Both the position numbers and the translations under genes were made by a program. A DNA stretch of 64,000 nucleotides from Paramoeba atlantica (Eukaryota > Protista > Discosea): the NCBI GenBank assembly GCA_977017575.1, contig CDRNVI010000033.1, forward strand, positions 62,001 through 126,000. Reading direction: 5' to 3'. Of the stretch, positions 1,543-50,446 are shown piece after piece. Position 1 is the first letter of the stretch. Each line of letters begins with the position of its first letter. The notes under the pieces are model-generated. The model was not told where the DNA came from, did not search any database, and saw only the letters and a list, made by a program, of their open reading frames with translations.

Positions 1543-3276
1543 ATGACCGAGAGATTGGTGACAGAGACTTGCGATTCATTACTTCAGCTTTCGTTTTTTG
1601 GGTTTCCACGTTTGACCTTGGAATCCGTTCTTTTAAACTCTGTAGCTGCAGGAGCTTGTATTGTTGCCTGGCAAAAAGATGAGTATCTTTTAAGCTACAC
1701 TCTTTGTTTTCTTATTGGGTACTCCATTTACTTGGAAAGAAATTGTTTTCTAGGTACAAAAGAAAGGCCGCCTGAGGCTGCAGTTATTGGATTGCCGGCA
1801 TGTCTGCTTTCTGCCCCGATTCTTTTGACTACTTCCCATTTGTTTGCTGTTGCCTCAAAAGGGAACGGATTTGGGGACGAACCTCTAGTAGAGGTTAGTC
1901 ATGCTTCTGTCGTAGTTTTTCTTGTGCTGTTTTACTTCGTGCTGTCCGTCCTATACGTTCTGAGAACAGAATGCCGAAGGATATTTGCATCTATTAGCTT
2001 GCTTGTCTCTATAATAGGATGGATGTTCAACCACTCTACCCTTCAATTAACTAAATCATGGTGTGATCTAACGTTTTCAATTGGAGTTGCTTTGCTTGGT
2101 CATAGTATAATGCTTCAAATATCATCATACGTTTACACATTTGCAGACGAATTCTGCGCGTACCGGATTAGCAGAGAAGTGGGGTTTCTATTTAATGTAT
2201 TTGCGGTCTTGTACACAAATCACTTTCTATTAGACTCTTACGCTACAGAGATTCGTGATGAACATAAAATTTTGTTCGCAACGTATTGCATCGCCCTCTA
2301 CGGTTTGAGTCCTACAAGCAAGAAGCGAACTCGAACCTTACGTCGCCACTATTTAGCTTTGGCAAGTGCTATTGCCTTTATTTATATGTTTTTTCTCGTA
2401 AAATTTGGGAAAAACTTATATAAAAATTGGATTTCTGCGGCATTTCTATTTCATTTCTTGGCAGGTTGTATCTTTCTAGCACTTGTTCTGTACATTACGT
2501 ACCCTGTGCAGGGGTTTTCTCTACATGCGAAACATCAACCGAAAAAGTCGAATGCGCAGTGCTTTCTACGTATAGGCTGTACTCAAAAAATTATAGCACG
2601 CAAGGTTTTTCATTACTTTTTTGTTTTTCTCACTTTTTGGGCTTTCTATTTCGAGTACAGCACTCAAATTTGCTTATACATACTTGAACTGATTACTATA
2701 GCGGCATTCTTTGTAGAACTGCTGCGTTCAAAACTATCCATAAAGTGGAAACTACGTCAACTTATTGATCGCTACTATCACGCGTACGCCGACGAACGCG
2801 ATCGCGGTATAATACGTAGTCATATCTACCTTTTGCTCGGTGTTACATTACCATTTCTCTCCTCCACTTACCCAGTGATTCAAAGCAAAGCTGACACAAT
2901 AAAAGATTCGAGGTGCCTCCTAGCTCCTCCGTATATAGGAATTTTGGCCTTAGGAGTCGTGGATAGCACTGCGGCAGTGGCAGGAAGTATTTGGGGTACT
3001 CACAAATGGAATGACTTATTCGGACTGCGTCATACACAACATACATATTTGTCTGCCAAAACTATTGAAGGTAGCATTGCGGCGCTTGTGATATCTACCT
3101 TAGTAGAAGTGTTTTTCAGATCAGGGCTAGGATATCCGACGTCTCTTTCTGATACTTTACACATCGCATTCAACATATCGCCCTTGTGCGTGGCGGAAGC
3201 AATGATAGACTCTTCCGATAATTTGCTTCTCCCTTTCTTCGCAATGATTTTGGAACAACTTAAAAGTATGTGTTGA
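1543..3276 (+). CDS. DOLK: dolichol kinase (CTP-dependent polytopic membrane kinase)
   Basis: Many TM segments; motifs ARKVFH, DERDRG...SHIYLLLG, GVVDSTAAVAG...KW...KTIEGS, DNLLLP typical of SEC59/DOLK. Confidence 0.88.
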   Translation: MTERLVTETCDSLLQLSFFGFPRLTLESVLLNSVAAGACIVAWQKDEYLLSYTLCFLIGYSIYLERNCFLGTKERPPEAAVIGLPACLLSAPILLTTSHLFAVASKGNGFGDEPLVEVSHASVVVFLVLFYFVLSVLYVLRTECRRIFASISLLVSIIGWMFNHSTLQLTKSWCDLTFSIGVALLGHSIMLQISSYVYTFADEFCAYRISREVGFLFNVFAVLYTNHFLLDSYATEIRDEHKILFATYCIALYGLSPTSKKRTRTLRRHYLALASAIAFIYMFFLVKFGKNLYKNWISAAFLFHFLAGCIFLALVLYITYPVQGFSLHAKHQPKKSNAQCFLRIGCTQKIIARKVFHYFFVFLTFWAFYFEYSTQICLYILELITIAAFFVELLRSKLSIKWKLRQLIDRYYHAYADERDRGIIRSHIYLLLGVTLPFLSSTYPVIQSKADTIKDSRCLLAPPYIGILALGVVDSTAAVAGSIWGTHKWNDLFGLRHTQHTYLSAKTIEGSIAALVISTLVEVFFRSGLGYPTSLSDTLHIAFNISPLCVAEAMIDSSDNLLLPFFAMILEQLKSMC

Positions 3277-3391: not shown

Positions 3392-3736
3392 TACTTTGCC
3401 CCCCTTACTTAAGAGTCCTTAACTACTTACAGTAAGAGTCCTTGAGGCTTCGACGAAGCCTCGGGCTGCCTGCGGCACGAAGCGCCGCCAGATTACTTTT
3501 TTTAAATTTACCACTCCTGATGTGCGTGCGTAATGGGGAAGTATGTTTGGGGCCTCCTCGTGGTCTTCACTGGCACTTCTATCTTATCGATAATACAGAC
3601 GCCGACCTTCATCAGAGAAAAAAACATAAGCAAGAAAAGTAACCGGCCATATTGAAATTTTGTGAAAAATACCGACCCCCCACTTAAGAGTCCAAATGCC
3701 CAAAATCGGCGGACTCTTAAGTAGGGGGGTGCAGTA
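3392..3736. mobile_element. TA-flanked MITE-like element, family C (341 bp between the TAs)
   Basis: Left TA-CTTTGCCCCCCTTACTTAAGAGTCC; right GGACTCTTAAGTAGGGGGGTGCAG-TA; internal hairpins at 3444-3462 and 3670-3736. Confidence 0.65.
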
Positions 3737-3760
3737 CCAAAATCGAACAAACACATAGAC

Positions 3761-4101
3761 TACTCCTCTTCTCAGTAATTTCTATAAATGTCACTCCTAA
3801 TTTTTCAGAAAAAAATTATCGATTTTCAAAATATTATGTTTTTGAAGAAAAGAACAGGAAAAGCTAGGATAGAAGGGAGAACACCGCAGAAAAATTTGAC
3901 CCTCACTTCCGACAAGGTCCTTGGATCTCACGTTCCGCGATAGCTTATCGAAGAAAAATAGCGTTTTTCCATCAGGCAGAATCATTTAATCAGGACTTTT
4001 TGCCTAACGATTCTCATTAATTTCTATAAATATACAGTGTAACTATAAATTTTCTTTTTTCTTATAATTTACATTTATGGAAATTAATGAGAGGAGGAGT
4101 A
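3761..4101. mobile_element. TA-flanked AT-rich MITE-like element, family E (Stowaway-like termini)
   Basis: 3761-3791 and 4071-4101 are inverted repeats with 3 mismatches in 31 bp; ends TA-CTCCTC...GAGGAG-TA. Confidence 0.65.
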
Positions 4102-4126
4102 ATAGTAAGTGTAGTAGTAGTAGTAA

Positions 4127-4207
4127 TACCGTATACCCCCCCCAGTAAGAGAGATTTGGCCATTTCGACCCAAAACCAATTCTTTTACTGGGGGGGGGTA
4201 TACGGTA
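4127..4207. mobile_element. 77 bp TA-flanked mini TIR element, family A/B
   Basis: TA-CCGTATAC8AGTAA...TTACTG9TATACGG-TA; its loop is an inverted copy of 4245-4280. Confidence 0.65.
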
Positions 4208-4223
4208 GTAGTAGTAGTAGTAG

Positions 4224-4504
4224 TACCGTAGACCCCCCCAGTAATAGAATCGATTTTGGGTCAAAATGGCCAAATCCTTGTTACTGGGGGGGGTACGCTT
4301 TTTGGGTGAGAAAGGACCTGTTTTGTTCATGAGTGCGTTGATTTTCAGCCTATCCAACCCCGCAACCACGCCATTCGCTCCCTCGCAACCGCCCTCACCC
4401 GCCCAAACACGCCCACCCGCCCAAATACCCCCCCCCCTCCAACGACACTCCCGATCCAAATCCTTGTTACTGGGGGGGTCTATTACTGGGGGGGGTCTAC
4501 GGTA
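4224..4504. mobile_element. 277 bp TA-flanked MITE-like element, family A/B
   Basis: TA-CCGTAGAC7AGTAA...TTACTG8TCTACGG-TA; homologous copy at 50139-50446. Confidence 0.72.
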
Positions 4505-4635
4505 GTAGTAGTAGTAGTAAGTGTAGTAGTAGTAAGTGTAGTAGTAGTAAGTGTAGTAGTAGTAAGTGTAGTAGTAGTAAGTGTAGTAGTAGTAAGTGTA
4601 GTAGTAGTAAGTGTAGTAGTAGTAAATGTAGTAGT
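4502..4635. repeat. tandem array of 15-mer GTAGTAGTAGTAAGT (8 units) in (GTA)n context
   Basis: Read directly; AAGT/AAAT marker recurs every 15 bp from 4519 to 4627. Confidence 0.95.
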
Positions 4636-4693
4636 TCACTTACTAATAGTAATACTATTTCTTTTTTAATCGTAGCACTATTTTTTATCAGAT

Positions 4694-5530
4694 ATGAGTT
4701 CTATGGATTCTCAGGAGCAAAAAATATTTCCTGCAAAAATTCGTGGTGCAAAATTTCCACAGGAAATTGAGCTTGCACGCTTCATTGGCAATGTTACGCA
4801 CGATGAACCGTCGTTTGCACCTGATACACCAGCATGCAACTGGCGCTGCACTAAATGTGACTCTTCAGGTCGTATAAGCTTGATAGGCTTGGAGGGTCCC
4901 AATTATGGTTCCCTAAAAGGGTCACTGGCATGGTCTTGGCTCCCGCTAAGCATTAAAAAAGTAAGAATTATACTCACTTCACTTTCAGGATTCATACTCA
5001 CGGACATTCTTCCTAACGGTATGAATGAGCTGCATCTAGAAGCAAACTTTTTTGGGGGAGACTTCGACGCTACTTCACTTCCACTTGATCTTACTACCCT
5101 CTCAATTCGCAATAATCGTTTTAGTGGCGCTCTTGAGTTGATAAAGCTGCCTGATAAATTGCGCATTGCCAATTTTTCGGTTAACAAGTTTTTGGGGCAT
5201 ATTGATCTTAGCAACTTGCCTCCGGCGTTGGACAAGCTCTACTTGAATCAAAATAGATTTTCAGGGCAGCTTGATTTGTCACGACTTCCAATTCCACTTA
5301 CGGAGCTCTTTGTATATCGCAATATGTTTGAAGGCGAGCTGGGACTGGGCTCCTTACCCCCCAATTTGAAATATATTGCTGCATGGGACAATAACTTTAG
5401 TGGAGTCCGTGATTACAGCAAGCTACCGGATCTCGTGGAAGAGATTAATCTTTCAATGAACCGTATTCGACTTGCGCGGGATTCACCCGTGCCTCACACG
5501 GTGAAAATCGGTAAACAACGGCGGAATTAA
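4694..5530 (+). CDS. leucine-rich repeat protein
   Basis: Repeated LPxxLxxLxLxxNxFxGxLDL units. Confidence 0.88.
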   Translation: MSSMDSQEQKIFPAKIRGAKFPQEIELARFIGNVTHDEPSFAPDTPACNWRCTKCDSSGRISLIGLEGPNYGSLKGSLAWSWLPLSIKKVRIILTSLSGFILTDILPNGMNELHLEANFFGGDFDATSLPLDLTTLSIRNNRFSGALELIKLPDKLRIANFSVNKFLGHIDLSNLPPALDKLYLNQNRFSGQLDLSRLPIPLTELFVYRNMFEGELGLGSLPPNLKYIAAWDNNFSGVRDYSKLPDLVEEINLSMNRIRLARDSPVPHTVKIGKQRRN

Positions 5531-23499: not shown

Positions 23500-24840
23500 T
23501 ACTGTCACCCCCCCTTTATACTGCGGGGGGGGGTGAACCCCCCCTTTATACTTCCGTTTTCATTCAGAAGAAAAAATGAGTGTCTAGATGAGTTTCCGCT
23601 AGTATTCATTTGAAGGTACACACTTCGTTTTTATGCATCAGTAAATTGTGTTTTTCGCCTAAAAAATCTTACCTCGAAATTGCAAAAAAACTGTTCACAT
23701 GTTTTTCTTTACTTGCATACGATCACACTTTTGTTACAAAGCCGACTGAGTCGGAAGCTCTATGGCAACATATACCTATATCTTTCTGCTAAAAGAAAGA
23801 ATTGCTAGTTTTATCTATCTCTATATGAACAGGGATCTCTCAAGAAAAGATATTTTATCGAGGGTTTCAATCTCATATACACCCATGGACAGAAGTGTGC
23901 CCCAGGCCTGGCAAATGTCAATTTTTTTTATCCATTTTTGCTCATTTCTGCAGCTTTCGAGAGATCTAGTTCCCCTAGCGAAGAGCTTTGCCGCCTATTT
24001 TTCATAGCGACCCACTGGTGCTCTGGTGGTGACCCCAAAGTAGACCAAAAACAAAAAATGGTACATTAGACATCTAGAAAAAACATCACCCTTTCAATGA
24101 TAAAATGAGAAAAAAGGAAATAGTATCAATATCCGCAATGCTCCCCATTGGTCTGAATAACTATTTGCAGACGTTTGGGAACAGACTTGATGGAATTCAA
24201 CACTTTCTGTTTATGTGGGGCGCGTTTTAGAGCATTAAACGCCTTTTCTGTGGCCTTTGTCAGGGTTACATAGTTATGTGGCTTAAACTACAAAGTTGTG
24301 TAGATTTATGCTGTTTGACTATCTCTGTTCGCTCCGAAACAAACAAAGCGATGTTTCATTTGTGACTTATACGAGGCGGGGTCCTCATGAAGAAACAACA
24401 GGGAGAAAAAAGGATGATATACTAGAAAATTTGACGGTGTTCCAAAACAAATGGGCAAAAAAACATGTCTTTTGGGCACAGGGGGCACAGGGGATTCCCT
24501 ATCAAGCAAAGGCGGCAAAGTTCTTCGCTAGGGGAACTAGATCTCTCGAATGCTGCAAAAATGAGCAAAAACGGATACAAAAATTGACATTTGCCAGGCC
24601 GGGGACACACTTCTGTCCATGGGTGTATATAGATAGTTTCAATCTCATACATGTATATATACACGCTATTCCTCAGCATATAGGGGTACAAACCGGCCTT
24701 AGAACACCAAAAAACAAACCGCTGTTTCGCGGTGTTTCACAAATCTAACACGCAGCCCCTTAATTGTTTCGCGGATTTTTCAAAAAATCAGACCCCCCCT
24801 TTATACTTCCGAAAGTCAGGTTCCCCCCTTTATACCTTAT
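23500..24840. repeat. direct C7-TTTATAC motifs bracketing the family D pair
   Basis: CCCCCCCTTTATACTTCCG identical at 23538-23556 and 24793-24811; shorter copies near 23508 and 24823. Confidence 0.75.
23875..24630. repeat. long inverted repeat pair (family D): arms 23875-23996 and 24510-24630
   Basis: Arms are reverse complements with 7 substitutions and 1 indel; partial copies at 52141-52183 and 63909-63941. Confidence 0.9.
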
Positions 24841-50138: not shown

Positions 50139-50446
50139 TACCGTGCACCCCCAGTAAGAGAATGGGTTTTGGGTCAAAATGGTCAAATCTCTCTTACTGG
50201 GGGGGATGCTTTTTTGGACAGTTTTCTCCCAACTTTTCTCCCAACTTTTTTTTGTGAAAACGTGTTAAAGCATTTAGCGGCCACATTTAAAATGTGGGTT
50301 ACCCCCGAGGCCCCCAACATGCGGACACTCACCCCCTACTCCCTATACGCCTCCTATAGGGCTCCCGTGCCAAATCTCTCTCACCGGGGGTCTCTTACTC
50401 AGCTCGAAAAGGGCTGAGTCTCTCTTACTGGGAGGGGTCTACGGTA
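50139..50446. mobile_element. 304 bp TA-flanked MITE-like element, family A/B, just downstream of hexokinase
   Basis: TA-CCGTGCACCCCCAGTAAG...TTTTGGGTCAAAATGGTCAAATC...; right end TTACTGGGAGGGGTCTACGG-TA. Confidence 0.72.

Follow-up and report, generated by a model that had tools for sequence, protein, structure and literature searches.

The intergenic region at positions 3392-4640 of the window (the whole stretch of 64,000 nucleotides that we analysed) is very probably, at a probability of roughly 0.85, a cluster of four non-autonomous MITEs that belong to three families and that inserted by cut and paste into TA dinucleotides, duplicating the TA as Tc1/mariner (IS630-Tc1-mariner) transposons do. 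The family membership of the elements, their boundaries, the TA duplication made by family D, their non-coding nature and the residence of Tc1-type transposases in the same genome are established by the observations reported here. We infer that the elements are, or once were, moved in trans by at least one of the resident Tc1-type DDE_3 transposases, whichever of them it may be. The cluster itself is ordinary for its host genome.

Layout of the cluster

Region 3392-4640 lies between two open reading frames on the same strand (1543-3276 and 4694-5530), and it holds four short elements. The original prediction had described four elements here, each bounded by inverted termini and flanked by TA on both sides, and our reading of the sequence bore out all of this, coordinates included. 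Element A occupies 3394-3734 (341 bp; TA at 3392-3393 and 3735-3736), element B 3763-4099 (337 bp; TA at 3761-3762 and 4100-4101) and element C 4129-4205 (77 bp; TA at 4127-4128 and 4206-4207), while element D, on the plus strand, occupies 4226-4502 (277 bp; TA at 4224-4225 and 4503-4504). Together they take up about three quarters of the intergenic spacer and leave untouched the pyrimidine tract and AG upstream of the next gene.

Their close packing is explained by a GTA-rich minisatellite, in which a TA occurs every three bases and into which three of the elements inserted. Read on the plus strand, 4100-4128 is the left remnant of this minisatellite, which was the host of the insertions of B (at its edge), C and D; a (GTA)n spacer at 4206-4225, longer in the other haplotype, separates C from D; and the stretch at 4503-4640, built of a 15-nt unit of three GTA plus an AGT-type variant, offers many TA target sites. 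This last stretch is about 76 bp (about 5 units) shorter in the other haplotype (C21). Several copies of the TATAC family (see below) elsewhere in the genome have TAGTA directly after the element. The end of the TATAC element may seed GTA repeats, or the element may prefer such targets.

Chance does not account for the elements: the poly-C core motif occurs 9 times within the window, against 0.69 expected. A fifth element lies on the plus strand at 50141-50444 (304 bp; TA at 50139-50140 and 50445-50446); it is a diverged relative of the TATAC and TAGAC families, and its left-end hairpin is identical in kind to theirs.

The genome that we searched comprises 45.7 Mb, with two haplotypes assembled. 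The other haplotype (C21:330.5-394.5 kb, from C21:326001-406000) aligns collinearly with the window, with an identity of about 99.3%, and the sole large difference between the two across the window is at a Tc1 relic near 24290. Both assembled haplotypes carry all four elements, so there is no empty site at this locus, and the empty-site polymorphism that the original prediction looked to is absent here.

Ends and hairpins

All three families share an asymmetric plan, with one plain end and one end that carries an inner inverted copy of the end; in each family this inner copy gives rise to a hairpin of 60-90 nt. The repeated end motif would be the binding site of the transposase, and because of the extra inverted copy each element holds at least three copies of this presumed site.

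The termini of element A lie at 3394-3418 and 3710-3734, with 3400-3418 inverted against 3711-3729 (19 nt, 95%). Its right end is a hairpin with arms at 3676-3693 and 3711-3728 and a 17-nt loop, in which the inner arm directly copies the left end (fold of -20.7 kcal/mol, z -6.7). Element B has termini at 3763-3800 and 4062-4099 (3761-3800 inverted against 4062-4101; 40 nt, 83%), and the inner arm of its right-end hairpin, at 4012-4049, is likewise a direct copy of the left end, here with a 5-nt loop. Element C is a near-perfect palindrome consisting of two ends and a loop and nothing else, with arms at 4136-4152 and 4181-4197 (17 nt, 94%) and a fold of -26 kcal/mol (z -7.1). In element D, where 4229-4244 is inverted against 4467-4482 (16 nt, 100%), the hairpin is at the left end (4226-4300) and at the right end the end motif stands twice in tandem (4456-4502); relative to the TAGAC consensus of about 313 bp, a module of about 36 bp near the right end is missing. 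Folded as single-stranded DNA, the hairpins reach -14.6 to -26 kcal/mol (z -4.2 to -7.1), and no shuffled sequence was equally stable.

Alignment of the hairpins of A, C, D and the element at 50141 brought out a C-run, a G-run and a CCCAAAA / TTTTGGG loop core common to all of them. The alignment supports a common origin for the hairpin modules of elements A, C and D, as had been suggested earlier from shared poly-C/poly-G arms and a TTTTGGG loop. Element B has no poly-C arms.

We considered whether the hairpins might encode a known structured RNA, such as a ribozyme or a miRNA precursor. An Rfam search at gathering score gave no match in the whole window; between 3300 and 4700 there were only sub-threshold matches to generic miRNA hairpins.

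Families and copy number

Two sub-families were named by their terminal bases, TAGAC, which includes element D, and TATAC. The 15-nt C/D-type end has 289 exact copies in the genome, 71 of them of the TAGAC type, while the reversed control pattern has none. The B-type end occurs 117 times (control 0), and among those listed 94 of 100 B-type ends start with TA.

Element D belongs to the TAGAC family of about 310 bp, the copies of which are 90-97% identical between loci (mean about 94%) and 98-100% identical within allelic pairs. Copies of D and TATAC were found in unrelated flanks at 16 independent loci, where the flanking dinucleotide was TA in 31 of 32 cases and the next bases varied. For element B, at least 30 copies are full-length, with identities of 83-91%; when B was searched together with its flanks, homology spanned TA, B and TA (query positions 462-802) and ended there in at least 10 loci. 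Element A is a shortened member of a mixed, lower-copy family that reaches about 1 kb. Most copies of this family align to positions 111-336 of A only, and several have an additional 185-655 bp at window position 3503/3504; the right end of A with its TA recurs at 3 independent loci, and about 4 share the left end (positions 4-6).

Dozens of sites in the genome match the hairpin of C (77 nt) and the leftmost 75 nt of D at 93-99%, and C shares 95-97% identity with the end hairpin in copies of the TATAC family, which measure about 315 bp. Except for C and its allele, the hairpin copies that we fetched run on into family-specific internal sequence. The hairpin is therefore an end module of the families of about 310 bp and not a separate family, as it had been taken to be. 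Among 100 ends listed, the spacing of a solo hairpin was seen only at C and its allele on the other haplotype, plus one 128-bp pair. Element C would thus be a TATAC copy that has lost everything from the inner hairpin arm to the far end, probably by recombination or interrupted gap repair between the repeated motifs. A deletion fits the two perfect ends of C, given that the inner arm in TATAC-family hairpins terminates differently.

The original prediction had proposed a genome-wide BLASTN search for each element. Elements A, B and D proved to belong to dispersed families, and the solo form C was found at one locus only; the flanking TA, on whose conservation across copies the prediction depended, is kept in the copies of B, D and TATAC. 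With lengths of 77-341 bp, below the limit of about 800 bp for such elements, inverted ends of 16-40 nt (83-100% complementarity) and dispersed copies, the elements have the properties of MITEs. They have no coding capacity: in A, B, D and the element at 50141 every one of the six frames is interrupted by stops, and in 40 copies of B its longest frame, of 51 aa, is never part of a long open reading frame, the frames that contain it extending to at most 110 aa.

Identity as a retroposon or SINE-type element (SIDER, RIME-like) is contradicted by the inverted ends, the lack of a tail and the fixed 2-bp TA duplication. RIP-like mutation bias was likewise rejected as a notable signal for the D copies, in which C>T/G>A changes are just mildly in excess (26, versus 16 reverse transitions). 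Exact-pattern scans of metagenomes found no relatives of the elements.

TA target-site duplication

Duplication of the TA is proven for family D only, by comparison of filled and empty sites. One D copy (L046:1438-1744; locus C83:146270-149513) sits inside another repeat. When its flanks were joined through a single TA, the resulting sequence was found at six other places in the genome, each at 0-2 mismatches, as against 0 for the control, and a longer query established that these six empty sites are uninterrupted copies of the host repeat. A second D copy (L037:1501-1798) interrupts a 19-bp tandem array, in which the junctions between neighboring units have a single TA as against TA-D-TA at the filled site. 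At a third locus, L041, a nearby paralogue without the element identifies the left TA as host sequence; on the right side the TA that one would expect is absent, as are two further bases. In the window itself, taking out D together with one TA brings the (GTA)n run back into phase.

For A, B, C and TATAC, conserved TA flanks point to the same duplication. The earlier assignment of a Tc1/mariner-like TA duplication to the whole cluster is in this way confirmed by empty sites for family D, and for A, B and C it has the conserved flanks behind it. Empty-site patterns for the TATAC copies at L006 and L005 had no match in the genome, and joined flanks searched against all fetched DNA yielded a junction-spanning paralogue at L041 only. 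The hemizygous copy at L043 gave no clean empty site, the partner haplotype being structurally different upstream. A repeat beside the L043 copy (L043:1050-1260) forms a tandem array of at least 8 units, with a period of 1995 bp, across C21:764700-782400, near the contig end.

The insertion was shared in 12 of 12 allelic pairs, and no copy of these families was seen to be haplotype-specific. We also came upon a 431-bp element at about 2474-2904 of L054 (C4:552674-555923) whose inverted ends (GGTGAGT...ACTCACC) are perfect over 7 nt and which is flanked by a duplication of 3 bp (AAT). It is present on one haplotype only, with the empty site at L052:753-756 (C9), and is a different, recently mobile TIR family.

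Resident Tc1-type transposases

At least 150 DDE_3 (Tc1/IS630-type) matches in the genome exceeded the Pfam cut-off when the best 150 of 676 candidates were scored. Many of the DDE_3 open frames are 330-400 aa long, with a maximum of 407 aa, and the mariner-type PF01359 had no match in the genome. The premise of the original prediction, a genome without class II transposons, is wrong in this case. As DDE_3 transposases are abundant, the MITEs are expected passengers and no isolated oddity. Copies of one Tc1 family are up to 100% identical, from which it follows that there has been recent transposase activity in the genome.

It had also been stated that the window holds no transposase. This is nearly true, the exception being a Tc1 relic at 23860-24650, where a "foldback" of about 760 bp is an internal-deletion derivative of Tc1. 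The other haplotype (L062:8600-9004) retains about 300 bp more of the relic, including a WPPNSPDLNPIENVW stretch, and there it matches the C-terminal region of DDE_3 at 35 bits; the two alleles differ by an internal transposon deletion.

A DDE transposase with the same TIRs as the elements, which had been suggested as a check, was not found among the ends listed and the best 150 of 676 DDE_3 candidates, and within that same set the coordinates of MITE-type end pairs and of DDE_3 matches had zero overlap. Some D-type and B-type end pairs, known by their coordinates alone, are 1.3-3.1 kb apart, and none of the DDE_3 matches listed falls inside them. Longer stretches bounded by MITE-type ends are at C44:685509-686836, C70:329125-330477, C10:194078-200015 and C23:369104-372194 for the D type, and at C12:98391-100037, C88:47138-48779 and C51:180817-183947 for the B type. 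Where Tc1 ends could be read (window 23869; L046:1747), they agree with the MITE ends only over a short terminal stretch, which is followed by a C-run, and the MITEs have no internal sequence in common with the readable Tc1 copies.

Tc1 fragments adjoin MITE copies in several of the fetched loci, end to end at L046 and L037. In the pile-up at L046:1100-3244, an A-like end (...GGGGGGGTACAG TA) is followed by a MITE of 257 bp with CTGT ends, then by the D copy and the end of a Tc1-family element. This Tc1 family gave 1894 first-look candidates, and some of its copies are 100% identical over 754 bp. The MITE-TA-Tc1 junction of L046 recurs at six other loci, so the MITE and the Tc1 may be mobilized or copied together. 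At L037:2539-3252 (C40:903374-904087), about 700 bp from the D copy, two fragments of Tc1 transposase lie on opposite strands and face each other. A copy of B truncated at position 309, 118 bp before a DDE_3 fragment (C100, C67), was examined as a possible sign of parentage and set aside as a juxtaposition.

Alternative explanations

Three other accounts of the cluster deserve consideration. Were the TA part of the elements (TACCGT...ACGGTA), there would be no target duplication at all, and palindromic or foldback repeats would have spread by recombination or replication slippage. Flanks by themselves, which are all that A, B and C have, cannot tell a duplication from a terminal dinucleotide, and the one-sided absence of TA at L041 is consistent with a duplication that is not always made. 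For family D, however, this account is contradicted: an element-borne TA would be absent from empty sites, yet the six uninterrupted paralogues of L046 have a single TA where the filled site has TA, element and TA, and the tandem-array junctions at L037 are of the same kind. We consider it extremely improbable overall. It is also quite improbable that the 60-80-bp end hairpin is the true mobile unit, with C as the ancestral form and the forms of about 310 bp as composites with a distant solo end. Element C is indeed a complete TA-flanked palindrome, in the hairpins of D and TATAC a TA comes directly after the inner arm, and in family A conservation is higher in the hairpin module (91-100%) than in the remainder (72-87%), the module also being the more widespread of the two. 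Against this, the fetched hairpins other than C and its allele extend into a shared family-specific interior, and solo spacing is confined, among the 100 ends listed, to C, its allele and the one 128-bp pair. Moreover, the inner arm terminates in GCATAC as opposed to the true end, CCGTATAC, and the two perfect ends of C match the outcome of a deletion.

The remaining account accepts TA-duplicating MITEs and differs from ours in taking them for fossils, inert filler whose autonomous partners are extinct and to which the resident Tc1 transposases are blind. This is possible, although we think it on the unlikely side. Both haplotypes carry the four window elements, the insertion is common to both members of each of the 12 allelic pairs, copies differ by 3-10%, and no autonomous partner emerged among the ends listed and the best 150 of 676 DDE_3 candidates. 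On the other side, that partner search was limited to the best 150 of the 676, the divergence is modest (D copies average about 94% identity), the 431-bp TIR element is polymorphic between haplotypes, and the Tc1 family with copies up to 100% identical speaks for recent transposase activity.

Host group and relation to known systems

KMP-11 (PF03037), whose Pfam name refers to kinetoplastid membrane protein 11, was matched at 151 bits once per haplotype and had no match in 14 control genomes, all of them bacteria or archaea; its presence makes this a kinetoplastid genome. The earlier description of the genome as kinetoplastid-like was correct to that extent, and no result pointed to a trypanosomatid. 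A motif like the conserved 3' portion of the kinetoplastid spliced-leader exon, differing at one position and followed by a GT donor, occurs once per haplotype (C14:91759-91780 and C23:255060-255081), and no spliced-leader tandem array was found at one mismatch.

The elements resemble the Stowaway-like or Tc1-mariner MITEs of plants, nematodes, insects and fungi, which are likewise short, non-coding and multi-copy, with TIRs, TA duplication and strong secondary structure, and the host genome here, like theirs, holds many Tc1-type DDE transposases. The likeness is one of features; Stowaway ends are of the CTCCCTCC type, whereas the ends here begin with CCGTA, CTCCTC or CTTTG. In addition, the asymmetric extra inner copy of the end is a feature of the present elements and no defining trait of Stowaway. 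The resident Tc1 / IS630 DDE_3 transposons use the same TA target and have the same kind of ends, and in one young resident family a short terminal stretch is followed by a C-run, as in the MITEs; in the readable copies, the end sequences are nevertheless not those of the MITEs, and there is no interior in common.

Merlin is a separate superfamily, IS1595-like, with a duplication of 8-9 bp. In the literature that we could search, the only DNA transposons reported for kinetoplastids are Merlin relics in Bodo saltans and Perkinsela, and these have no recognizable ends or duplications (PMC8101967). They are thus a case of class II elements in non-trypanosomatid kinetoplastids, but the elements described here instead have sharp ends, a TA duplication and copy numbers that reach the hundreds. 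Trypanosomatids have been described as devoid of class II elements (PMC12278014), and a survey of Tc1/IS630 transposons includes Bodo saltans virus only, its host not being listed (PMC11544213). In this literature, no paper joined MITEs with kinetoplastids, and there was no report of Tc1/mariner-type MITEs in this group.

Significance

The elements themselves are ordinary; their interest rests on the host group and on the one-sided hairpin build that they share. It is conceivable, though we regard it as rather unlikely, that the one-sided end hairpin, common to three MITE families with otherwise unrelated sequences, is no accident but a lineage-specific design of kinetoplastid Tc1-type elements, which would give the transposase alternative pairs of ends, leading to mini-elements like the 77-bp palindrome, and would place long perfect hairpins in polycistronic transcripts, where they could feed RNA interference; on this proposal these would be the first Tc1/mariner-mobilized MITEs for Kinetoplastea. 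The occurrence in a kinetoplastid of TA-duplicating MITE families with sharp boundaries and copies in the hundreds, together with many Tc1-type transposase genes, bears on when and how DNA transposons were lost in the parasitic lineages, and the natural ends and transposases of this genome are possible genetic tools to try in kinetoplastids.
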